From the IMG/VR virus record IMGVR_UViG_3300030419_004471, positions 62,001 to 126,000 of that record: a stretch of DNA of 64,000 nucleotides; one strand, given 5' to 3'. Position 1 is the stretch's first letter, and every line of letters starts with the position of its first letter. Positions 15,137-62,391 of this stretch are shown piece after piece. The notes beneath the pieces are model-generated. The model was not told the DNA's origin and did not search any database. It worked only from the letters and a program-made list of their open reading frames with translations. Position numbers and translations under genes: made by a program.

Positions 15137-15143
15137 AGTTTAG

Positions 15144-15215
15144 TAGCCCGACGGAGAATCGAACTCCGGTTACAAGGATGAAAACCTTGCGTCCTAACCA
15201 CTAGACGACCGGGCC
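15144..15215 (-). tRNA. trnE: tRNA-Glu(TTC)
   Basis: Cloverleaf; CAAGG-TTTTCAT-CCTTG anticodon arm; GTTCGATTC T-loop; CCA not encoded. Confidence 0.93.
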
Positions 15216-16805: not shown

Positions 16806-17507
16806 TTATTTTTTCAAATTATTAACAATATAATCACATAATTTTTGATTTGCTTCTGTACTTTTGTGATTATCATTGATTTGTGGAAGTACCTCTTCTA
16901 TGGTTGGGTTATGCCAAACACCAGTCCACGGAAATAATTTTGGTGAGTTTGGTATTTTAAAGTCAGGTTTAGGTAAAAACATTCCAAATATATTTGGTTT
17001 ACCCAATTTAGTTAATGTATCTGCTATTGTACAGAAGTATTGAATAATAAAATAATTTGTGTTTTCTCCAAACTTATTTGTATAATCTAACAAAAGCATT
17101 TCATCTTCTGTACTTCCAATCGCACCCTTTCCGGCTGTTACAACTCCGCATTTGGTTTCAGATTGAGCCGATGGAAGAGCGCCCCTAACTGATATTGATT
17201 TCCAGTTTACCCAGTTACCATCTTCCATATGTAAAATTAGGTTTGTAAAAAATCCAAACTGATATATAACCAAAGGGTTTTTTAACGAAAGTATGTATGG
17301 GATTTTATCTATTAGAGTTTGTAAAGTAAAAACCATTGGCATTCCAGGTTCTCCAAAAGTTTCCCACTTACAATTATAGTGTTCACCCAATAGTTGAGGG
17401 TATGATTTAAACTCATAGTTAGCTTTTTCAAATTCAGACTGGTAAGGTCGAAGTTGTTCGATTTCATTGGTATATGAATCACCTATACAAATAACATTTG
17501 AATACAT
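16806..17507 (-). CDS. SGNH/GDSL-like protein (paralog 1)
   Basis: ICIGDSYT at N-terminus; NDNHKS near C-terminus. Confidence 0.6.
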   Translation of the reverse strand: MYSNVICIGDSYTNEIEQLRPYQSEFEKANYEFKSYPQLLGEHYNCKWETFGEPGMPMVFTLQTLIDKIPYILSLKNPLVIYQFGFFTNLILHMEDGNWVNWKSISVRGALPSAQSETKCGVVTAGKGAIGSTEDEMLLLDYTNKFGENTNYFIIQYFCTIADTLTKLGKPNIFGMFLPKPDFKIPNSPKLFPWTGVWHNPTIEEVLPQINDNHKSTEANQKLCDYIVNNLKK

Positions 17508-18803: not shown

Positions 18804-18952
18804 TTGGTATGAATATTATAAGTGCTTTGCTTTAAAGTATGTGAAGAACTTTCCAATGATATCTGTTGTTTGTGTTTGTTCTGCCGAACTTATACTATTG
18901 GTTGTTCTAACAACACTTCGTTTTACTTTTTTATATATTACTGGCTTTTCCA

Positions 18953-21322
18953 TTATTTATTGTGTACTATTATTCCGTTTGCGATATACGAATGTAATCT
19001 ATCAACTGTTATGTTATAAACTGTTTCTTTTGGATTAGAGCGTGCTACTTTAATTTCTTTTATTGTTTTCCACTCACCACTAACATTTACTTGGTCTCCA
19101 TCCTTTAATATATGATTTGTTAAATCAACACCATACATTGATTTATATGGTTCTTGATTTGAATCTGGTACTAAAGATTTCCAACCATCTTTTGTTAAGA
19201 ATGGGTGTTCCGGTGTAAACTCAATACCTGTATCATCTATTGTATATAAAGATGGTTCATTTCCTAATCGTTCACAAGCAGCTGCGTGTGATTCTACAGT
19301 GTGTGTATTATCGGTTGCTATTACTTCTGCTGAATCTAACTTTTCACCATCCCATCCTAATACCACATCTCCAACTACAATATCTTCAATGTTTTTAACA
19401 TCTCCATTTGATAAAGATATTTGTGTTCCAGCTGCAAAACAAGTAGGTGGTAATCTGTTGTGTGCTAAGAATGACCAAGCAAAGAAGTTGTGATTCTTAT
19501 CAACACTATCTAAGTTATATACAGTTTGTGGTTCTTCGTGTTCGATTATATCTACTATCCTTACACCATATCCATCAGCGTGTAATACCTCATCTCCTAT
19601 AGCTATTTGTTCTACATCTAATCCACAATCCTCTTTAGTTCTTTTTGGGTCGTATGATGCATATCCTTTACCACATACAAACAATGGGTGGTCTGGTGTA
19701 CCTGTTAGTTCTTTTACTATTCTGTTTGATTTGAATTCTTCTTTAGCAAATATATAACTAACAACCTTTTCGTTCTCCTTAACCATTGTAGATTTTACTT
19801 CACAATATTCATTATGGTCTCCATCGTGATTGTATGTTAATACTTTATCTCCAACAACTACATCTTCAATATTTGTTTGTCCTTTTTCTTCAACTTCTAT
19901 CATAGTTCCAGCAACAAAACAAGGTGCGTTGTGTACAACAAATGGTGTTGATGCACTTACAAAATATGTATCAGTATCTTCAACATCTACTCTATATAAT
20001 GAGTGAGATGATGGTTCATCTATAATCGCAACGTGTGATTCGGATATTGCGAGTATATCTCCGTTTTCATCTACCAATGAATGGCTTGCTGGATTTAATT
20101 CTCCAGCTGGTTTGAATAGGAATTGATTTGAACCTGTATCATAAACTAATACATTTTTTAATATTGAAAAATAAATGTTTTCTCCACCAGTTAAATTTAG
20201 TTCTATACAACACCCATATGATAATGAACTTGATTCTATTTTTTCTACTATAGAAGATGTAACTTTAGAACCACCTCCTAATTGGTTACCTTCGTGTGAC
20301 CAAGAATAAAATATTTCTGAATCATCTGTATCTGGTGAACCTGAAACATAATAAGATTTAAGAGATTCACTAACTATTAAGTTGTATGGGTATTTAAAAC
20401 TATCATCTGGCTTTTGTAGTTGTTCCGAACCCAACATACCATCAGTTGAAGCTTCTCTCATCCAATTTGTAGTCCATTCAAAATAATGTTTTATTGGTAG
20501 TCTAACTGCAGAACCTGTTGTTGTATATGTAGATATATTTGATGGTAGTCCGTATTCTCCATCTATTTTATAATTACCCAATCTCACATAAGATATATCA
20601 GTTCCATATACAATACCAAATTCTCTAATTGATTGTACTTTTCCTGCTGATAGTTGTGTTGGGTTTGTGTGATATCTTTCAAGATATCTATATGATTTAG
20701 CTAGATAGGTATCTCTATAATAGGTAAGGTTGTCCGCCGAAGATGTATTAGATGTATCTGTAAATTTAAAGAATGCCAATGGTGCGTGTCTTTCGTCTGC
20801 ATCCTTTTCTATTATATCTGGTACTATATTAGAATCGTTAATAGCTGAAGTCATTGTGTTAGCTTCGTAGTTACTACCACTATAATAAAACTCTGGGATT
20901 AAACTATCTTGTGAATTATCGTGAAATAATTTTAATACTTCTACTCTACTTCTTGCATAGCCAGAATCAAATAGTGCGTTTTCATCATAACACAATCTTA
21001 AAATAAATCTATCAGATGCATCATCAACAGCAGTTGGATATATACAATTAACTTCTTCCTTTATCTTAGTTACTTGTGTTATAAACGTTGCATCATTTGC
21101 GATTACCTCTTCTAATTTTTCAACCATATTTGATTGAAATCCTTTATAAATCAACCAAAGTTTTGTAATGTTATTAGTTGATAGTATGTTAATAAACGCA
21201 GTAAAGTCGAATTTGGAATCAAGCGTTGAACTCAAGAATCCAGTATCTGTATTGAATTCCAATAATCTTAGATTATCGTTCTCATCAATAATAAAATCCG
21301 AAGAAAATAAAGTACCTTTCAT
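18953..21322 (-). CDS. ATP-grasp-like N-terminus fused to three tandem Hint (BIL/intein-like) domains
   Basis: SDF...LRLLEFNTDT; FVVHN-AP-CFVAGT; LAHN-RLPPT-CFAAGT; TPEHPF and TPDHPL block B; VYN...IIVHN-K. Confidence 0.85.
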   Translation of the reverse strand: MKGTLFSSDFIIDENDNLRLLEFNTDTGFLSSTLDSKFDFTAFINILSTNNITKLWLIYKGFQSNMVEKLEEVIANDATFITQVTKIKEEVNCIYPTAVDDASDRFILRLCYDENALFDSGYARSRVEVLKLFHDNSQDSLIPEFYYSGSNYEANTMTSAINDSNIVPDIIEKDADERHAPLAFFKFTDTSNTSSADNLTYYRDTYLAKSYRYLERYHTNPTQLSAGKVQSIREFGIVYGTDISYVRLGNYKIDGEYGLPSNISTYTTTGSAVRLPIKHYFEWTTNWMREASTDGMLGSEQLQKPDDSFKYPYNLIVSESLKSYYVSGSPDTDDSEIFYSWSHEGNQLGGGSKVTSSIVEKIESSSLSYGCCIELNLTGGENIYFSILKNVLVYDTGSNQFLFKPAGELNPASHSLVDENGDILAISESHVAIIDEPSSHSLYRVDVEDTDTYFVSASTPFVVHNAPCFVAGTMIEVEEKGQTNIEDVVVGDKVLTYNHDGDHNEYCEVKSTMVKENEKVVSYIFAKEEFKSNRIVKELTGTPDHPLFVCGKGYASYDPKRTKEDCGLDVEQIAIGDEVLHADGYGVRIVDIIEHEEPQTVYNLDSVDKNHNFFAWSFLAHNRLPPTCFAAGTQISLSNGDVKNIEDIVVGDVVLGWDGEKLDSAEVIATDNTHTVESHAAACERLGNEPSLYTIDDTGIEFTPEHPFLTKDGWKSLVPDSNQEPYKSMYGVDLTNHILKDGDQVNVSGEWKTIKEIKVARSNPKETVYNITVDRLHSYIANGIIVHNK

Positions 21323-21373: not shown

Positions 21374-21730
21374 TTAAGAAATTAATCCACCATTTCTCAT
21401 ATTATTTCTTATCTCTGTTGCCGATATTGCTCTAACTTGTGCTGGTGGCTCGTGTTCTATTACTTCATATCCCACCTCTCTACCATAATTAACTGATTCT
21501 ATATCAGGAATAATAATTACTTTAACTATTCCACTTTCAACTAAATCAGATAATTCGTATTCTATATTGTTCTTTATCTCTTTTGAACTCCAAGGTTGTT
21601 CTTCATTTTTAGGAACATCTCTTATAGCAATACAAACATTTTTGTTTTCTTTTAATCGTTGTTCTATTAACCAACGATGACCTTTATGCCAAGGTTGCCA
21701 CCTTCCAATAAACAAGCTATATTTTCTCAT
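21374..21730 (-). CDS. HxGH nucleotidyltransferase (APS-kinase-associated/NMNAT-like)
   Basis: FIGRWQPWHKGH, YGREVGY, ISATEIR. Confidence 0.75.
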   Translation of the reverse strand: MRKYSLFIGRWQPWHKGHRWLIEQRLKENKNVCIAIRDVPKNEEQPWSSKEIKNNIEYELSDLVESGIVKVIIIPDIESVNYGREVGYEVIEHEPPAQVRAISATEIRNNMRNGGLIS

Positions 21731-22090: not shown

Positions 22091-22456
22091 TTAATTTGTT
22101 TCCTTCCAAAGAACTTGTACTAAAACTATGAGAAAACAAAGTATGAGTTGCACAAAGATTTTAGATGTTACAGGTTGCTTAAAGAAGTGAGCAGTAAGTA
22201 GTGCGTAAGATATAATTCCTAATATAAATCCAATGAATCTGTTTGGCCATAACTGATTGTCGAATACCGTTACTCCATAGTATGTTCCTTTTAGAAACAT
22301 CCAAGTAATCGGTATAGCTACAATATACCATCCCCACCATTCTGGTTTATATTTAGGATTAATAAATTGCCAATTGTGTTGAAACCATACTATCACTTGT
22401 GCGGCTGAAATAAGTGTTACTGCGTAGAATAAATGTAACCAATTAAATTTTTCCAT
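22091..22456 (-). CDS. 4-TM membrane protein
   Basis: Four hydrophobic helices. Confidence 0.6.
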   Translation of the reverse strand: MEKFNWLHLFYAVTLISAAQVIVWFQHNWQFINPKYKPEWWGWYIVAIPITWMFLKGTYYGVTVFDNQLWPNRFIGFILGIISYALLTAHFFKQPVTSKIFVQLILCFLIVLVQVLWKETN

Positions 22457-23282
22457 AAAAGTTTTTAATGTATTTGTGTATTTCGTTTGCTACCTCTATA
22501 TGTGCTGTGTAGCTGGGGTGTAAGTCATCGGTGTATCCTTTTAACTCATCCCTTAATGCTGTCTTTCTATCGTTTATATACCAACCTGACATACAATCAT
22601 TATGTTCTTCAAACTTAATAATTCTATCATCTAATTTGTATTTTAGAAAAAAGTTTTTGTAATGATGTGCGGTATGGTGTCTTATCGCTTGATTAACTAT
22701 AAAGAATTCAGCTCCTATTGTTTTCATAAAAGAATAGAACTTTACAAATTGCTCTGCTTCTTTTTTAGAGTGATGTTCTTCATCTATCATATTTTTAATA
22801 TAACTTTCTAATTCTTTTTGTATTATTTTTCTATCTTCTTCACTATCTGTTAAATCTTTTGGATTCTCAATATTACCAATTGTTAGATTATAATATCTAT
22901 TAAGTTTATTAAACCATATTTCATCTCTATATCCAGCTGTCGTTTCTATAACGAATAAGGTGTTTTTTACTTTATCTAAGTTTTGCTCACACCATTCCAT
23001 AGTCATTCTCATAGCTCTGATAGATGAACCACCTCCTCTACTCTCATCTATTAATTCTGCATTTAAAATCTTCGCTAATCTATTTGGCCAATTAATAGAA
23101 ATCTTACTATCTACTTCTAACTCTGGACTTGTTACATCCCATTCCCATCCAAAGTTTTCTTTGTAGTAATCTCGATAATCTTTTTGATTGAGTGGCCAGC
23201 CGTGAGTAATACTGCTACCATTTGTGTATAACCTTTTGAATTTCTTCATTAATTTTATATACGATTCTTTCTTTGTCTCCAC
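22443..23282 (-). CDS. SGNH/GDSL-like protein (paralog 2)
   Basis: LYTNGSSITHG; SRGGGS; DDLHPSYTAH. Confidence 0.6.
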   Translation of the reverse strand: METKKESYIKLMKKFKRLYTNGSSITHGWPLNQKDYRDYYKENFGWEWDVTSPELEVDSKISINWPNRLAKILNAELIDESRGGGSSIRAMRMTMEWCEQNLDKVKNTLFVIETTAGYRDEIWFNKLNRYYNLTIGNIENPKDLTDSEEDRKIIQKELESYIKNMIDEEHHSKKEAEQFVKFYSFMKTIGAEFFIVNQAIRHHTAHHYKNFFLKYKLDDRIIKFEEHNDCMSGWYINDRKTALRDELKGYTDDLHPSYTAHIEVANEIHKYIKNFYGKI

Positions 23283-25785: not shown

Positions 25786-25795
25786 TATTTTTTAG

Positions 25796-26027
<232 letters not shown>

Positions 26028-27449: not shown

Positions 27450-29522
27450 TTAAAATAAAGTTTTTTTAGATTCATCCCAAGTACCTTTTCCTTCCCATTT
27501 AAAATCAAAGCTGAAATCTTTTGTTTTGTTAAGAAATCGTTCTTCTGCATATAACTCTTTCACTTCGTTTTCGGTTCTACTACCATCTTCCCATTTTGGT
27601 TTTGCGAAGGTTCTTGCTCTTTCTATTAGTGAGGATTTTTGTTGTGAGAAATCCATAACCTTAAATGGTCTATCTTTGGGTTGAGTATATTTTGCTTTTA
27701 TTTTACAAAACCAATCTCCTTCTTTATTTATCTTAAAATAATATTCTGCATCATATGGAGATTCCAATGCGGCTCCGAATTCTAACTCATCTATCTTTTT
27801 ATCGAATTTTAATTCCATCTCATATCCTCCTCTTGCTCTCCATAATATTTCAAATAATGTAAATGGTTCTTTTATTAAAGAATCAGCAAACACATTTAGG
27901 TTTGTGTTTAATATTTTTAGTTCGGTATCGTTATAATCAATTTTATTAAATACACTCGGGTCATCATATTTTATATTATATAGTTTTCGTAAATTTGGTC
28001 TATCCCATATTTTAATTGTTGAATCGGGTTGTACCTCAATCAATAGAATATCAAAGGCCTTTTGTCTAGTTAACATATGTGGCTTACCAAATGAAAAATC
28101 ATTTCTTATAAAATTCATATCATATGTAAAATTCGCTAATCCAAATTTTTCTGGGTTTTGTCCCACAATCGTTTCTGCACTTAGTATAAACCCTGGATTA
28201 GAACCAATACCTGTCATCTTATTTCTATTTTTGTAAATAAAGGTTAGGGTTGATTTGTGGTCTATTCTTCTTTCCGTTGGGAATCCATTTATAAATGTCG
28301 TAAATGTATCAATACCTGCTTCTTTAAAATCAAGAAAGTTTTTATCCATTATCTCCCTAGTCATTCTTTTACTCATATCCTCAAGCACTTTGTTACTTGC
28401 GCTTTCACCTCCAATCTTTAATAAAAAGCATCCTGATTTCTTTAATAGTTTAAGATATTCTAAATCCATTCGTTTATCACATCTTGCGAACCCAGCCCAC
28501 TTTATATCTAGTCCTCTTTCTATAATTCCTTCTGCAAACTCTGTTAATGCTTTTAGGTTTCCGTTTACTAAACTATCTAAAAACCAAATAACATTAGTAC
28601 CTTTCGTTTTATTGAGATGTTCTATTTCATCTAATGCGGATGTAGAACTTCTTTGTCTGTATTTCCAAAAGTGAGTCTCTGAACAAAACGTACACTTAGC
28701 TATACATCCTCTACTGAATTCTGTAAGTAATCCATTTGGCATTTCGTATTTTGAAAAATCAAAATCTTTATAGTTTGGTATAGGAAAGTTGTTAAGGTTT
28801 ATTCTTTGATTTATCGGTTGTGTTAGAAGCTTCATACCCTTATGATTCATCTTACCATTATCAATCTCTTCTAATATATCTAATATTATTAATTCGGATT
28901 CCCCTACAATACCATATTGAAAAAGTGGTTTGTTATTGTATGAGTAAATTTTACCTTGCTCAATATCGTGCTTTCTAAAATGTAGATTAGGTCCTCCGCA
29001 TATGAATGTGGTGTTTGGTAATCTTTTTCTTAGTTCAGTTGCAAACCACTGTACTGGCCCTTCATTACAATAATATAAAGTAAACCCAATTACTTTTGGA
29101 TTTGCTCTTACTATTTTGTTTATGTACTTTTTTAATATTTTAGATACTGGTTTTTCTAAATGCTTTGGATATTCATTTATTTCCCATCGTTGTAGGTGGT
29201 GTGGATTAAATGGGTCAAATGGAGTTATCCCGTCTTTTACCCAACTACGAGATTGTTGATATACTTCAATGTTTAAATCTAAACAAGATGATTTATATCC
29301 GGCCTCATTTACAAGGGATGATAATCTTGCTATGTTATATGGAGGTAAGTCATAAGCCCATTCGGGTAATAATAGAAACAATACATCTGAGTTTCTCTTT
29401 AACTTTTGAATGTGTACATCCGTTAAGTTTTTAGTAGAAGGCTGTGCGTGCTTCTTTATTTCTTCAAAAAATAAAACATCCGAATTCATATTAAAAATAT
29501 ATTTTCTTTTTAGCTGCTCCAA
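27450..29522 (-). CDS. Cobalamin-binding radical SAM protein
   Basis: LPPYNIARLSS, IGFTLY, ICGGP B12-binding module; FSRGCIAKCTFC; GGESAS; INGFPTE. Confidence 0.9.
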   Translation of the reverse strand: MEQLKRKYIFNMNSDVLFFEEIKKHAQPSTKNLTDVHIQKLKRNSDVLFLLLPEWAYDLPPYNIARLSSLVNEAGYKSSCLDLNIEVYQQSRSWVKDGITPFDPFNPHHLQRWEINEYPKHLEKPVSKILKKYINKIVRANPKVIGFTLYYCNEGPVQWFATELRKRLPNTTFICGGPNLHFRKHDIEQGKIYSYNNKPLFQYGIVGESELIILDILEEIDNGKMNHKGMKLLTQPINQRINLNNFPIPNYKDFDFSKYEMPNGLLTEFSRGCIAKCTFCSETHFWKYRQRSSTSALDEIEHLNKTKGTNVIWFLDSLVNGNLKALTEFAEGIIERGLDIKWAGFARCDKRMDLEYLKLLKKSGCFLLKIGGESASNKVLEDMSKRMTREIMDKNFLDFKEAGIDTFTTFINGFPTERRIDHKSTLTFIYKNRNKMTGIGSNPGFILSAETIVGQNPEKFGLANFTYDMNFIRNDFSFGKPHMLTRQKAFDILLIEVQPDSTIKIWDRPNLRKLYNIKYDDPSVFNKIDYNDTELKILNTNLNVFADSLIKEPFTLFEILWRARGGYEMELKFDKKIDELEFGAALESPYDAEYYFKINKEGDWFCKIKAKYTQPKDRPFKVMDFSQQKSSLIERARTFAKPKWEDGSRTENEVKELYAEERFLNKTKDFSFDFKWEGKGTWDESKKTLF

Positions 29523-31275: not shown

Positions 31276-31295
31276 TTATTTGATAGTTTTAGTTG

Positions 31296-31366
31296 AGGTG
31301 GAGATAGGATTCGAACCTATGTAAGAAGATTTGCAGTCTGCCACCTAGCCGCTCGGTCACTCCACC
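31296..31366 (-). tRNA. trnC: tRNA-Cys(GCA)
   Basis: GGTGGAG/CTCCACC acceptor stem, U73 discriminator, CT-GCA-AA loop, GGTTCGAATCC; one mismatch in the anticodon stem. Confidence 0.9.
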
Positions 31367-49633: not shown

Positions 49634-50635
49634 TTAAACTTCACTTAATGATTTTTCAATCACTTTCACTATCTTATAAGGGTCTGCATTTGAAGCAGGT
49701 CTCCTATCTTCTAAATACCCAATCCAATTTTTTGAAGTTGCTTGTGGTATTCTAATTGAAGCTCCTCTATCTGATACTCCCCAACTAAATTTCTTAATTG
49801 ATTGAGTCTCATGCAAACCTGTTAATCTTTGTTCATTAGATGAGCCATAATTTTCTATATGTTCTATATGATTCTTTGCAAATGATTCAAATATTCTAAA
49901 GAATAACTCTTCACCACCTGTTTCTCTCATTTCTGTTGTTGAAAAATTAGTATGTAATCCAGAACCATTCCAATCTCCTGTGATTGGTTTTGGATGAAAT
50001 TCTACTTTCAAATTATATTTTTCTGAGATTCTATGTAAAAGATATCTTGAAATCCATAATTGGTCACAAGCTTCTTTATTACCTTTACCCATTACTTGGT
50101 ATTCCCACTGTCCTAACATTACTTCAGCATTGATTCCAGTGATATCTAAACCTGCATCTAAACATTGATTTAAGTGTTCATCTACAATATCTCTACCACT
50201 TACAAGTCCACCACCTACTGAACAATAATATTTTCCTTGTGGTGCAGGATATCCATCTTTTGGAAATCCAATAGGTTTACCATCTTTCATAAAAGTATAT
50301 TCTTGTTCGAATCCATACCAATTATCAGGATTATCTTCCAATTCTGCTCTGGTATTTGATTCGTGTGGTGTTCCATCTGTATTTAACACTTCACATAAAC
50401 AAAGAAACCCATTTTCTCTTAATGGGTCTTTTACCAACTTTACTGGTTTTAATAAACAATCTGAATAGTTTCCTTCAGCTTGTAATGTTGAACTACCATC
50501 GAATCCCCATTCAGGACAATCTTCAATAGACAAGGCCTTAGATTCAATAATTTTTGTTTTACTTCTCAAATTTGGTTCTGGTTTATAACCATCTAACCAA
50601 ATGTACTCTACTTTAAATTTTTCAAATTTAATCAT
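49634..50635 (-). CDS. glnII: Glutamine synthetase, type II-like
   Basis: EYIWLDG, WGFDGSST, GFEQEY, GINAEVMLGQWEYQ, HPKP..GDWNGSGLHTNFS, RLTGLHET, DRGASIRIP, YLEDRRPASNADPY; 333 aa. Confidence 0.95.
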   Translation of the reverse strand: MIKFEKFKVEYIWLDGYKPEPNLRSKTKIIESKALSIEDCPEWGFDGSSTLQAEGNYSDCLLKPVKLVKDPLRENGFLCLCEVLNTDGTPHESNTRAELEDNPDNWYGFEQEYTFMKDGKPIGFPKDGYPAPQGKYYCSVGGGLVSGRDIVDEHLNQCLDAGLDITGINAEVMLGQWEYQVMGKGNKEACDQLWISRYLLHRISEKYNLKVEFHPKPITGDWNGSGLHTNFSTTEMRETGGEELFFRIFESFAKNHIEHIENYGSSNEQRLTGLHETQSIKKFSWGVSDRGASIRIPQATSKNWIGYLEDRRPASNADPYKIVKVIEKSLSEV

Positions 50636-51355: not shown

Positions 51356-52576
51356 TTAAAACTGAGGAACATCGTCCTCATTATCTTCAGTGTCCTCATC
51401 TTTCACATCATTGAATAGAGGTTCACCATTTTCATCTTTTTGATACTTCTGTACCAATTGTTTCACATAAGTTCTTTCTGAATCAACTCCACCATCCTGA
51501 GAGAAGAATGGAAAGATAGAAATCTCAGCTGCTTCACCTAATTCGAAACCGTCATAAAGTAATCCAGCCATTTCAACACTTGCTCTGGTAGAAACCATAG
51601 CGGTAAGTTTACCATTTTCACTCATCGATTGAGTTCTAGTGTGGTGTGCAATTTCAGCTACTGCTTTCAAATCATCTTCGTTTACTTCAGGAAACATATA
51701 ATTTAGTAATCCAAATTCTTCAGTATCATTAAGAACATCCATTTCGATAGTAACAAATCTATCTAAGATTGCTCTATCCATTACTCTAGTCGATGTATAT
51801 TCATTACCGATGTTAGCCGTAGCGATGAAGGTAACTCCTTCAGCCACATTCACAATCGGTGAACCTTCGGCTTCATCTAATCTCAAATATCTCTGACCAC
51901 TATCAAGAACAGTCATTAAGATGTTCCAAGCATCAGGGTGAGCCCTACTCAACTCATCTAATAGAATAACTGCGTTTGGAGTTTTGATTGCGGTAACAAA
52001 GGCAGATTCTGAAAAGAAAGTACCCTTACCTTTATCAAAGTGTGTGTTACCGATTAATGTTGCTCTTGGGTCCTGCGTAGCTCCCAAGTTAAAATAGAAA
52101 TCAGGTCTATCTAATGCCTTAACCAATGCTTTTGCAGCCATAGTTTTACCACAACCAGCAGGTCCTGTCATCATAATATTTTTTGCTCTTACAGCAGACC
52201 TAATAAGATATTTCCACTTTAGTTCTTTCATCACCAATTCTTGTGGTTTCAAAGATGTAGAACCCTTATGGATAAAATCTTTAATTGCTGTATGGTCTCC
52301 CTTATCTTCAAATTGAACACCACCATTATCGGTATTCATTGGGATAACTAATGCGTTATAAACTTCCATATCAACTTTTCTATAAACTTTTTTTCCGTTT
52401 TTGTTGATATATGCTTGAACCGCCTTACCTTCGTTGTAAGCCGATTTTCTCACACCAGTGGTGGCACCTAAAGTACCTACTTTTACACCAGTGGTATCAA
52501 TTAATTTAAATGTGTTTCCAAAGGTTTCAACTTTGTAAACTTCGTTTGGTACATAACCAGTTTTAATTTCACTCAT
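51356..52576 (-). CDS. MoxR/CbbQ/CobS-type AAA+ ATPase
   Basis: GPAGCGKT, ATLIGN, LLDELSRAH, ATANIG, MDRAILDRF, STR. Confidence 0.9.
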   Translation of the reverse strand: MSEIKTGYVPNEVYKVETFGNTFKLIDTTGVKVGTLGATTGVRKSAYNEGKAVQAYINKNGKKVYRKVDMEVYNALVIPMNTDNGGVQFEDKGDHTAIKDFIHKGSTSLKPQELVMKELKWKYLIRSAVRAKNIMMTGPAGCGKTMAAKALVKALDRPDFYFNLGATQDPRATLIGNTHFDKGKGTFFSESAFVTAIKTPNAVILLDELSRAHPDAWNILMTVLDSGQRYLRLDEAEGSPIVNVAEGVTFIATANIGNEYTSTRVMDRAILDRFVTIEMDVLNDTEEFGLLNYMFPEVNEDDLKAVAEIAHHTRTQSMSENGKLTAMVSTRASVEMAGLLYDGFELGEAAEISIFPFFSQDGGVDSERTYVKQLVQKYQKDENGEPLFNDVKDEDTEDNEDDVPQF

Positions 52577-61239: not shown

Positions 61240-62391
61240 CTATAAGTATACTGTATTATAATTTTCGGAAGAAATATCAAAAGAATCTGTAAAAATAAAT
61301 TTTGCTATATCTACATTCCTCTTTGATTCTAAATTATATTTGTTGATTAATTTCTGATTATTTAATAATCTTTCTTTACATTTTTTATTTATATCATGCC
61401 AATCTAACTTACTTAATCTAAGTAATTCATCTGCTATAACTTTAGCTTTATTCATAACATCCCCATTTATATCATCATAAGAGTGGTCTATGATATCATC
61501 GAACATATCAAATCCTAATTTTCTATAATATTCAACAATACCTTTATAACCAAATATTATTGGAAATTGTAATGAAAGAAAAGAATTTAGTGGTTTTTCT
61601 GTATTAAATTGTTTTTCTCCCTCCGTTTCGGTTACTAAATCAATATAAGCGTTATTAGAAAATTGTGGTTTTAATGCCCACCTAAAATCAGTATCCAAAA
61701 TACTATCTATTTTTATTTCTGGAACTTTGATATCTTCATACTCTCCTTCTTTTGAAGATAGAATCGCCATAGAATCTAATTTATTTTGTAGTATATGATG
61801 TACCATAGATACTCTATGTGGTCTCATACTCCAGTTTAAACATTGGAATAGATAAGGTTTATGTTCTACATATTTAGTACCTAAATAAACAGTATCCCAA
61901 GGGTGATAAGTATTATTATGAGGACTTATAAAAAATAGATTTGGAAACTCTGATTTGAATATTTCCCAATCCTTATATTTTATATTATCATCAGAAGTAT
62001 AGACACCAATTAATTTAATAGTATTATACTTTATATTTCTTCTTGTAAGTTCGTTATCCCATCTTTTAAAATCTTCTTCTCTTCTATGCTCACCCATAAA
62101 ATCTATAACAAATGTATCACATTCTATATCATAAAAAGTTGGATTTTCAGAACTAATCTTATTACCAGTACCAGTACCATCATCTGTCCAGTTTATATTG
62201 GGACTACACATTTCTTCTAATTCATATCCATGCACAAAAAACATATCAAACTTTCTATCTAATGTATCTCTTAATACAGATATTGGATAATTTAATCCAA
62301 TTCCATTATTACTTTTTAGTAGAAGTGAAATTCGGTGTTTATTTAATGTACCTAATTTTAACTCTTTATTTAATTGAGTAGTGTAGGGCAT
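61240..62391 (-). CDS. Glycosyltransferase-like protein with GT10-type E..TEK motif
   Basis: IDLVTETEGEKQFNTEKPLNSFLSLQFPIIFG...GFDMFDDIIDHSYD. Confidence 0.55.
   Translation of the reverse strand: MPYTTQLNKELKLGTLNKHRISLLLKSNNGIGLNYPISVLRDTLDRKFDMFFVHGYELEEMCSPNINWTDDGTGTGNKISSENPTFYDIECDTFVIDFMGEHRREEDFKRWDNELTRRNIKYNTIKLIGVYTSDDNIKYKDWEIFKSEFPNLFFISPHNNTYHPWDTVYLGTKYVEHKPYLFQCLNWSMRPHRVSMVHHILQNKLDSMAILSSKEGEYEDIKVPEIKIDSILDTDFRWALKPQFSNNAYIDLVTETEGEKQFNTEKPLNSFLSLQFPIIFGYKGIVEYYRKLGFDMFDDIIDHSYDDINGDVMNKAKVIADELLRLSKLDWHDINKKCKERLLNNQKLINKYNLESKRNVDIAKFIFTDSFDISSENYNTVYL

Follow-up and report, generated by a model that had tools for sequence, protein, structure and literature searches.

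An ATP-grasp-like phage protein ending in tandem Hint domains: a possible self-processing ligase precursor

What use does a phage make of a ligase-like protein whose C-terminus is a row of autoprocessing domains? The question is raised by a gene in a 64,000-nucleotide stretch of DNA, positions 62,001 to 126,000 of the 213.6-kb IMG/VR virus record IMGVR_UViG_3300030419_004471, referred to here as the window. All genes of the window (30% G+C) lie on the minus strand, as do all features whose coordinates are given below. The gene occupies positions 18953..21322 and, judged from its translation, is a single unbroken open reading frame (ORF) encoding a 789-residue precursor, in which an ATP-grasp-like domain is followed in order by a degenerate Hint domain, the dipeptide Ala-Pro (AP), a first intact Hint (Hint1), the linker RLPPT, a second intact Hint (Hint2), one lysine and the stop codon. 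An original prediction, made from the DNA letters and their translations, had drawn the same boundaries, from the FVVHN end of the degenerate Hint through AP, RLPPT and the two complete Hints to the terminal Lys and stop, and all of them hold. A search with the full-length protein recovered more than 650 homologous clusters, all metagenomic, and because these have the same architecture a chance pattern is ruled out.

The architecture of this protein is solid, and its function is inferred from it. The reading that we favour, although we would put it somewhat below an even chance, is that the gene encodes the precursor of a self-processing carboxylate-amine ligase and forms a conserved two-gene phage cassette with an overlapping ORF of 45 residues.

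The intact Hint domains and their linkers

Several Pfam models recognize Hint-clan domains at residues 467–622 and 628–788, with E values from 1e-6 to 1e-14. Hint1 (residues 468–622; 19457..19921), delimited with Pfam, reads CFVAGT...TPDHP...LAHN with Arg623 at the +1 position and matches the models Hint_2, Hint, PT-HINT and Intein_splicing. Hint2 (residues 628–788; 18959..19441), delimited with Pfam and NCBIfam, reads CFAAGT...TPEHP...IIVHN with Lys789 at +1; it matches Intein_splicing with an E value of 1e-10 and passes both NCBIfam intein models, intein_Nterm (26.8 bits, cut-off 24.5) and intein_Cterm (33.3 bits, cut-off 15.6). The two domains, 155 and 161 residues long, share a CF.AGT start, a block-B TP(D/E)HP motif and a His-Asn end. 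By sequence, the RLPPT linker (residues 623–627; 19442..19456) lies between them, and Hint2 is followed only by Lys789, the final residue of the 789-residue protein, and the TAA stop (18953..18958).

Other labels attach to the same residues. The top Pfam match in both Hints, and in every homolog, is the AXH (Ataxin-1/HBP1) domain (E 1e-21); since its extent coincides with that of the Hint models, namely blocks A and B in the N-terminal halves, we take it for a cross-match. A homing endonuclease was likewise rejected, the PADLOC ‘HEase’ and Pfam Hom_end_hint matches covering just the first ~35 residues of Hint2, which correspond to the Hint part of those models, and an endonuclease domain is absent from both Hint1 and Hint2. 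A polymorphic-toxin pretoxin-HINT was ruled out by the single Lys, with no toxin domain, after the last Hint.

To which class of Hint do these domains belong? The residues following the three His-Asn dipeptides of the protein are Ala466, Arg623 and Lys789. Type-A bacterial intein-like (BIL) domains are defined by an N-terminal Cys, a block-B T..H, a C-terminal His-Asn and the lack of a +1 nucleophile, and proceed through an N-terminal thioester, cyclization of the C-terminal Asn and attack by the freed amine (PMC4031507). Judged by sequence, Hint1 and Hint2 have all four type-A features. Because Arg and Lys stand at +1, the intact Hints are of BIL type and not splicing inteins, as had been predicted from the Ala, Arg and Lys at these positions; the +1 Cys, Ser or Thr of class-1 splicing inteins is found neither in the window protein nor in its relatives, which have R/K/F/Y or Lys there. 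Among Hint1-position copies in the relatives, Cys1 and T..H are each present in 160 of 160 and His-Asn in 156, and the +1 residue is Arg in 116, Lys in 25 and rarely Phe or Tyr. At the Hint2 position, Cys1 is found in 159 of 160 copies and His-Asn in all 143 that are complete, the +1 residue is always Lys, and in 135 of 143 two-Hint relatives this lone Lys is the entire tail beyond the last Hint.

The segments between the domains are far less uniform, and this bears on a second claim of the original prediction, that processing could release defined micro-peptides, AP and RLPPT. RLPPT proves to be one of 114 distinct inter-Hint linkers in 160 two-Hint proteins; these are 1–36 residues long, begin with R or K, often end in T or C, and are often rich in Pro and Gly. 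The spacer before Hint1 in two-Hint relatives is AP in 111 of 173, A in 14 and SP in 11 and is absent in 26, so that AP is common but not universal: in roughly one two-Hint member in four it is shortened or missing. The release of defined peptides is thus not supported. A broader version can be framed, in which the upstream Hint would, by Asn cyclization, free the N-terminus of a spacer while the downstream Hint holds its C-terminus as a thioester, the Ala-Pro and the linker peptide then being released, transferred or cyclized head-to-tail, for example to cyclo(Ala-Pro). The order His-Asn/spacer/Cys1 at both junctions, with conserved catalytic residues, is what such a device would have; two-residue spacers (AP, SP, RA, RF, KA, KF) are common, X-Pro thioesters cyclize readily as a matter of general chemistry, and a hypervariable linker amid conserved processing domains recalls the core peptides of ribosomal natural products. 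Yet the members without a spacer, and six inter-Hint linkers that consist of a single Arg, speak against it, as does the cost of one 150-residue domain for each small peptide. Linkers that are Pro/Gly-rich and variable in length also look like plain flexible linkers, and members of the family that lack intact Hints would be unable to make peptides, yet keep the rest of the cassette. We consider peptide production decidedly improbable.

The degenerate Hint

Residues 295–465 (19928..20440), which end in FVVHN, give only a marginal Pfam match on their own and were assigned by hhalign and Foldseek. A profile of this segment from 129 homologs aligns end to end with the canonical Hint profile of the family (hhalign probability 97.3%, E 2.3e-11), and a similar profile reaches the sequence of Tetrahymena BIL2 in the PDB (E 9e-4). 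In an AlphaFold2 (AF2) model of residues 1–465 (predicted local distance difference test score, pLDDT, 95.7; predicted template modelling score, pTM, 0.89), the best Foldseek match of the segment is again BIL2 (6y75; E 2.8e-9, template modelling (TM) score 0.77), and numerous inteins and Hedgehog (1at0) are matched as well; TM-scores for the whole group are about 0.8 by target length. On these models the segment has the fold of the Hint superfamily and is packed rigidly onto the ligase domain as a single unit. For the three tandem Hint-fold domains of the original prediction, one of them degenerate, hhalign, Foldseek and Pfam are therefore in agreement.

The pattern of loss in this domain is uneven. 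Gly295 occupies the position of Cys1 and the block-B Thr and His are lost, while blocks F and G are retained and a conserved insertion of ~23 residues is present at about residues 328–355. A class-3 intein (WCT, with a block-F Cys nucleophile) was ruled out, there being no conserved Cys in the 129 sequences. The terminal His-Asn is kept in 267 of 272 relatives (98%), among them 18 of 20 without intact Hints; its retention even there argues for selection on the C-terminal cleavage motif itself. Only the Ala-Pro spacer (residues 466–467; 19922..19927) separates this His-Asn from Cys1 of Hint1 in the sequence.

The N-terminal ATP-grasp-like domain

Residues 1–288 (20459..21322) were assigned from an AF2 model and Foldseek. 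Modelled alone (pLDDT 95.6, pTM 0.90), they have 16 significant Foldseek matches in the PDB (E 2e-6 to 1.6e-4, probability 1.0), which comprise only plant, yeast and nematode (homo)glutathione synthetases and E. coli YjfC/YgiC, with TM-scores of 0.40–0.47; the 17th-ranked match is far weaker (E 0.12). Glutathione synthetases and YgiC/YjfC form the circularly permuted branch of the ATP-grasp superfamily, and in solved relatives ATP activates the C-terminal carboxylate of a short peptide, which is then joined to an amine. By this structural comparison of a model, residues 1–288 are a minimal circularly permuted ATP-grasp domain of the glutathione-synthetase/GspS/YgiC type, an assignment of fold that we consider sound; the modest TM-scores mark it as a divergent, reduced version. 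YgiC and YjfC are peptide-spermidine ligases (Pederick et al. 2023, as cited in PMC12568646).

At the sequence level, the link to ATP-grasp proteins is limited to the metal-ligand hairpin, a predicted Mg2+/substrate-binding element placed by YgiC and Ddl alignments at residues 7–27 (21242..21304) with the signature S-x-D-F...L-L-E-x-N-T-D-T. Here SDF...LRLLEFNTDT aligns to YgiC 101–120, LDL...PKLLENNADT (hhalign E 1.5e-4), which places D9, E22 and N24 on YgiC D102, E115 and N117, the Asp...Glu-x-Asn metal-ligand motif; the same hairpin aligns to residues 282–308 (ADF...LEVNT) of the D-Ala-D-Ala ligase 4egj. The alignment begins at about YgiC residue 95, and the phage domain is without the N-terminal pre-ATP-grasp subdomain of ~95 residues found in that family. 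The hhalign probability is 52% against the single YgiC sequence and 19% against a YgiC alignment, the latter lowered by the shallowness of that alignment, whose members are at least 77% identical.

Conservation within the phage family is much deeper. In 129 diverse sequences, down to 20% identity, D9, E22, T25 and D119 are invariant, and N24, D26, T27, K60, D101, R109, S120, K173 and R233 are at least 90% conserved. Two nearly invariant lysines, K60 and K173, are candidates for ATP binding; K173 stands in the motif P-D-x-V-x-K. The family Arg, R100 of YgiC in R-x-D, corresponds to Ser7, itself nearly invariant across the phage family, so that the ATP-grasp-like N-terminus without the usual Arg, as originally proposed, is borne out by the AF2/Foldseek fold, by the YgiC motif alignment and by this replacement. 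Residues 1–288 match no Pfam, PHROGs, NCBIfam or PADLOC model, and the BFVD viral structure library leaves them unmatched (best E 0.11). The Pfam GSP_synth model (PF03738) does not match the window protein and gives weak matches in 9 of 129 relatives (best E 0.0026); look-alikes of the domain in ESM-Atlas are TTL, YheCD, ATP-grasp_3 and GSP_synth clusters. As modelled, the domain is likely to be catalytically competent.

The N-terminal module might instead be non-enzymatic, a structural or binding protein, for example of the virion or a fibre, that merely has an ATP-grasp-like shape and whose C-terminal domains would serve folding or maturation. TM-scores below 0.5 and the silence of Pfam and NCBIfam on this domain could be read in this way, as could a carbohydrate-binding-module-like insert in some relatives, which is a lead only, and a sub-threshold C-terminal domain of the tail-fibre Peptidase_S74 type in one relative. 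However, the metal-ligand triad and a dozen polar residues are invariant or nearly so over deep divergence, which is typical of an active site, and the surrounding genes are metabolic and auxiliary rather than structural. This makes a non-enzymatic module very unlikely.

The insert just mentioned is found in homologs of ~930–970 residues (P0114, P0067, P0074 and others), where ~165 residues (about residues 283–450) stand between the ligase domain and the degenerate Hint; no Pfam model matches them, and in ESM-Atlas they resemble CBM_4_9 and CBM30 (score 0.95–0.96).

The small partner ORF

The second gene of the cassette (18816..18953) encodes 45 residues and overlaps the stop codon of the large gene in the sequence TAATG, the last A of TAA being the A of the next ATG. 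Its product is basic and Cys-free, with the pattern M..P.IYK....R....L....K....I..F..YFKAKH(L/S), in which Y7, K8 and H44 are nearly invariant. In 79 of 82 loci the large gene is followed, between −1 and +31 nucleotides past its stop, by an ORF of 44–53 residues, and this holds also where identity between the large proteins falls to ~32%. Searched alone, the partner yields a family of 167 clusters, all of 45–50 residues and all unnamed, and three of three members picked from that search lie 4–9 nucleotides downstream of a ligase-Hint gene of 618–631 residues.

The ORF is present whatever the number of Hints and also follows variants that are Hint-less or end in a Cys-rich tail. Since it persists in Hint-less members, the partner accompanies the ligase module rather than the Hints, and on that ground we propose it as the substrate or partner of the ligase.

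Copy number of the Hints and the tail they interrupt

How did the Hints come to stand at the end of this protein? An exhaustive search with residues 1–465 gave 265 representatives, each aligned from residue 1 of the module; among IMG/VR phage contigs, 121, the longest of 326 kb, carry a gene for a relative. Outside these, tblastn against 50,697 phage records returned only two unrelated intein matches, in Vibrio phage helicases, and megablast of the 12 kb around the gene against a cultured-phage collection returned no match. Hints were counted with hidden Markov models in 252 non-redundant full-length members: intact copies number zero in 15, one in 70, two in 160 and three in 7, in keeping with the variable Hint number that had been predicted. 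Over all intact Hints of this census, Cys1 is present in 403 of 404, T..H in every complete copy and the terminal His-Asn in more than 97%; the residue after a complete last Hint is Lys in two- and three-Hint proteins and Arg in a minority of single-Hint forms. The intact Hints are without an endonuclease and only 147–161 residues long.

Copies within one protein are 25–46% identical, and there are no recent duplicates. In a tree of the Hint domains the majority of second-position copies fall into one well-supported clade, and some of them are found in another, together with first-position copies and single Hints. On a tree of the N-terminal module (175 leaves) at least 26 changes of copy number are required, as against 55–67 with shuffled labels. 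The divergence of the paralogs, together with the small number of changes relative to shuffled labels, means that the array, as read from these sequences, is old and mostly inherited, under selection, with occasional gain and loss. The suggestion that the repeats form a diversification module fares poorly in this light, the copies being so divergent, their catalytic residues near-perfectly kept and their number largely inherited.

The Hint-less relatives disclose what lies beneath the array. In these proteins the degenerate Hint is followed directly by a Lys/Pro-rich tail of 1–10 residues. The corresponding tail of the window protein is broken up by its two intact Hints. P0132, which is Hint-less, ends HN-PAPPPKL, and L025, with an N-module 66% identical, ends HN-AP-[Hint]-RGIPKL; similarly, Hint-less P0164 ends HN-YKLKPQF and P0154 (N-module identity 41%) ends HN-AKS-[Hint]-KPQY, each sequence being closed by its stop codon. 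In these pairs, which are the few informative ones, a tail that is continuous in Hint-less members is interrupted by Hints in their closest relatives, in the manner of intein-free and intein-containing alleles, and this pattern suggests, at the level of sequence, that the flanks would be rejoined following excision of the Hints.

The same observation invites a reading in which the intact Hints would be mini-inteins, selfish or neutral, that have settled in the tail of a phage enzyme and do nothing beyond their own removal. The presence or absence of a Hint in close relatives at the same point of a continuous tail would be explained in this way, as would the at least 26 copy-number changes on the N-module tree and the passage of Hint2 through both the N- and C-terminal intein models. 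But these domains of 147–161 residues have neither a homing endonuclease nor a +1 nucleophile, and a single stop codon could remove a C-terminal Hint, yet Cys1 is intact in 403 of 404 copies and both divergent paralogs are kept. Moreover, the same position is occupied elsewhere by a Hedgehog-like Hint, a sub-threshold Peptidase_S74 or Cys-rich domains. Selfish insertion is in our view unlikely, though it deserves to be taken seriously.

The last Hint of ~10% of members retains Cys1 and block B, but its block G is replaced, the end reading ...EHNFIVEG.V.SGLGDN..LN..FKRQ..., and a terminal Asn is missing. A reading of these as truncated last Hints was rejected, since they form a coherent alternative subtype, whose sequence recalls a Hedgehog-like or type-B BIL-like Hint. 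The subtype is seen in L026, L030, L039–L043, L061, L064–L067, L076 and related proteins. Two further C-terminal arrangements were observed. The five most divergent relatives (P0239, P0255, P0256, P0258 and P0265) carry a Cys-rich extension of ~80 residues straight after the His-Asn, and the Hint-less P0198 ends in a sub-threshold Peptidase_S74-like domain (E 0.0035); Peptidase_S74 is the self-cleaving chaperone of phage tail fibres.

A model for processing

These features can be assembled into the mechanism that we favour, that of a self-processing ligase precursor. The degenerate Hint would have lost thioester formation but could still cut after Asn465 through cyclization of that Asn; alternatively, it may merely hold the tail in its former active site. 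Each intact Hint would form a thioester at its own Cys1 and cyclize its terminal Asn, after which the flanks may be simply cut or, as in type-A BIL domains, rejoined when the freed amine attacks. Maturation would yield a ligase of ~52 kDa with the short tail APRLPPTK, free or shed, as in the Hint-less relatives, and the Hints would be removable inserts, possibly with a timing or regulatory role. The ligase would then act on or with the small basic protein translated along with it, for example in a reaction that activates the carboxylate of a peptide or protein and couples it to an amine such as a conserved Lys or a polyamine.

Several points weigh against this mechanism. All of its reaction steps are inferred. 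On the side of the ligase, TM-scores to ATP-grasp structures are below 0.5, with root-mean-square deviations of 8–10 Å, and sequence support is marginal (hhalign 52% and 19%, no Pfam match at threshold); the Arg of the GspS family is replaced by Ser, and the ATP-binding lysines cannot be mapped beyond candidates. On the side of the Hints, the homology of the tails rests on a few short and variable sequences, and the ~10% of members with an Asn-less last Hint would be unable to rejoin their flanks. Pro at −1, as before Hint1, is unfavourable for the N-S acyl shift in engineered inteins. In addition, a cut after Asn465 would free the tail together with the Hints, so that a rejoined tail would not be on the enzyme, and the model does not specify which fragment matters. 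Finally, the C-terminal residue of the partner is not strictly conserved, which makes the partner carboxylate less likely as the activated site.

If the flanks were neither hydrolyzed nor rejoined in cis, the Hint thioesters could instead be attacked by an outside nucleophile, such as a Lys of the partner, of a virion protein or of a host protein, and the upstream segment would be attached to it without ATP, in the manner of BUBL or Hedgehog. The degenerate Hint has its best structural match in BIL2 of BUBL, which passes a ubiquitin-like domain on to Lys epsilon-amines in an ATP-free reaction (PMC8616854). The residues after His-Asn are mostly Lys or Arg, with a lone Lys at the end of the protein; the partner has a nearly invariant Tyr-Lys and Lys-His; and the Hedgehog-like, Asn-less last Hint of ~10% of members would be able only to cleave or transfer at its N-terminus. 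Such conjugation is hard to reconcile, however, with Hint-less members in which partner ORF and ligase module are unchanged: the core of the cassette persists without Hints, which are thus not essential to its core function. There is also no cargo domain between the Hints, and if the His-Asn of the degenerate Hint cuts, Ala-Pro alone would remain on the Hint1 thioester. We rate conjugation as rather unlikely.

A combination of these chemistries can also be envisaged, an autocatalytic cassette for tagging peptides or proteins in which the degenerate Hint would free an N-terminus and the spacers, carried as thioesters by the intact Hints, would be either released as activated or cyclized micro-peptides (an Ala-Pro diketopiperazine, for instance) or moved to a Lys of the partner, alongside ATP-driven ligation by the fused ATP-grasp domain. 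We hold this to be quite improbable; if true, it would bring thioester and acyl-phosphate ligation chemistry together in one phage polypeptide, an arrangement not found in the searchable literature.

Relation to known systems

The closest counterparts of Hint1 and Hint2 are type-A BIL domains (Amitai et al. 2003; Dassa et al. 2004; PMC4031507), with which they share Cys1, T..H, His-Asn and the lack of +1 Cys, Ser or Thr, as well as mini size, freedom from an endonuclease, tandem arrangement and location in a variable part of the host protein. Unlike those domains, they reside in a phage enzyme and not in a bacterial secreted protein, stand at the extreme C-terminus with a C-flank of one residue (Lys), and are preceded by a degenerate Hint that has the C-terminal cleavage motif only. 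Arrays of Hints that cut at both ends, with Lys involved, are also found in the BUBL proteins of Tetrahymena (BIL2; 6y75, 6tmm), but there a folded ubiquitin-like cargo lies between the BILs, whereas the phage protein has linkers of 0–36 residues and its ligase cargo at the N-terminus. Hedgehog/Hog proteins likewise place a functional N-terminal domain before one or more C-terminal autoprocessing Hints, and a further likeness is the Asn-less last Hint, with an extension of ~25 residues, of ~10% of relatives; the Hints of the window protein, in contrast, have retained His-Asn, a sterol-recognition region is absent, and its cargo is predicted to be an enzyme. With YgiC/YjfC, GspS and the eukaryotic glutathione synthetases the N-terminal domain shares the fold, the signature D...LLE-x-N-x-D-T and a length equivalent to YgiC ~95–386, and differs from the group in its fusion to Hints, in the missing pre-ATP-grasp part and Arg, and in a similarity that falls below family thresholds.

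The component domain types, ATP-grasp ligase and Hint/BIL, are already known. The fusion is unnamed in Pfam, PHROGs, NCBIfam and PADLOC and was not found in the searchable literature; nor did those libraries or that literature yield an enzyme-integrated degenerate Hint with a conserved His-Asn, C-terminal BIL inserts with a single-Lys flank, or an obligate small partner. The family is abundant in large aquatic phages, and for phage biology it points to an unexplored module of protein or peptide modification. Intein research gains a natural series of zero, one, two and three type-A BIL domains with a one-residue C-flank, suited to asking how a thioester is resolved without a +1 nucleophile. Protein engineering could also profit, should the domains turn out to be efficient, from compact BILs that accept Pro, Thr or Cys at the −1 position and Arg or Lys at +1.

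Genomic surroundings

The neighbours of the gene are auxiliary and metabolic, not structural, and typical of large aquatic myophages. They include a Nol-like carbamoyltransferase (1007-2722), a radical-SAM protein of 690 residues with a weak, sub-threshold B12-binding match (27450-29522), a short glutamine-synthetase-like protein, another carboxylate-amine ligase fold (49634-50635), and a MoxR/CobS-like AAA ATPase (51356-52576) that is 55.7% identical to its counterpart in Microcystis phage Mel-JY01, the nearest cultured relative. Three tRNA genes are present, Glu-TTC (15143-15215), Ala-TGC (25795-25869) and Cys-GCA (31295-31366). A scan for promoters and terminators gave no signal above chance. 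Upstream, a 118-residue ORF (21374-21730) weakly resembles cytidylyltransferases (HxGH-type motif, E 4e-4); it was rejected as a member of the cassette, this neighbour not being conserved in other loci.

In related loci a 2-oxoglutarate (2OG)-Fe(II) oxygenase-like gene (PF13640) lies at most three genes downstream of the small ORF in 50 of 82, and a SET-domain-like gene of ~145 residues, a borderline assignment (22.3 bits, cut-off 22.4), is present in 28, directly after the small ORF in 26. These genes occur in relatives (L001, L015, L045, L085, L087–L089 and others) and not in the window. 2OG-Fe(II) oxygenases and SET proteins are types of enzyme that modify Lys and Pro in proteins, and their proximity would fit the Lys/Pro-rich tails and the Lys-rich partner; the association is suggestive, but such oxygenases are numerous in these phages. 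Related loci also carry PhoH, HSP20, thymidylate synthase and peptide deformylase. Within the window, two SGNH/GDSL-hydrolase-like ORFs (16806-17507 and 22443-23282) were recognized by an N-terminal GDS(Y/I)T-type motif or a DUF6071 match, and in relatives (L056, L089) GDSL-like genes are again found downstream of the cassette.

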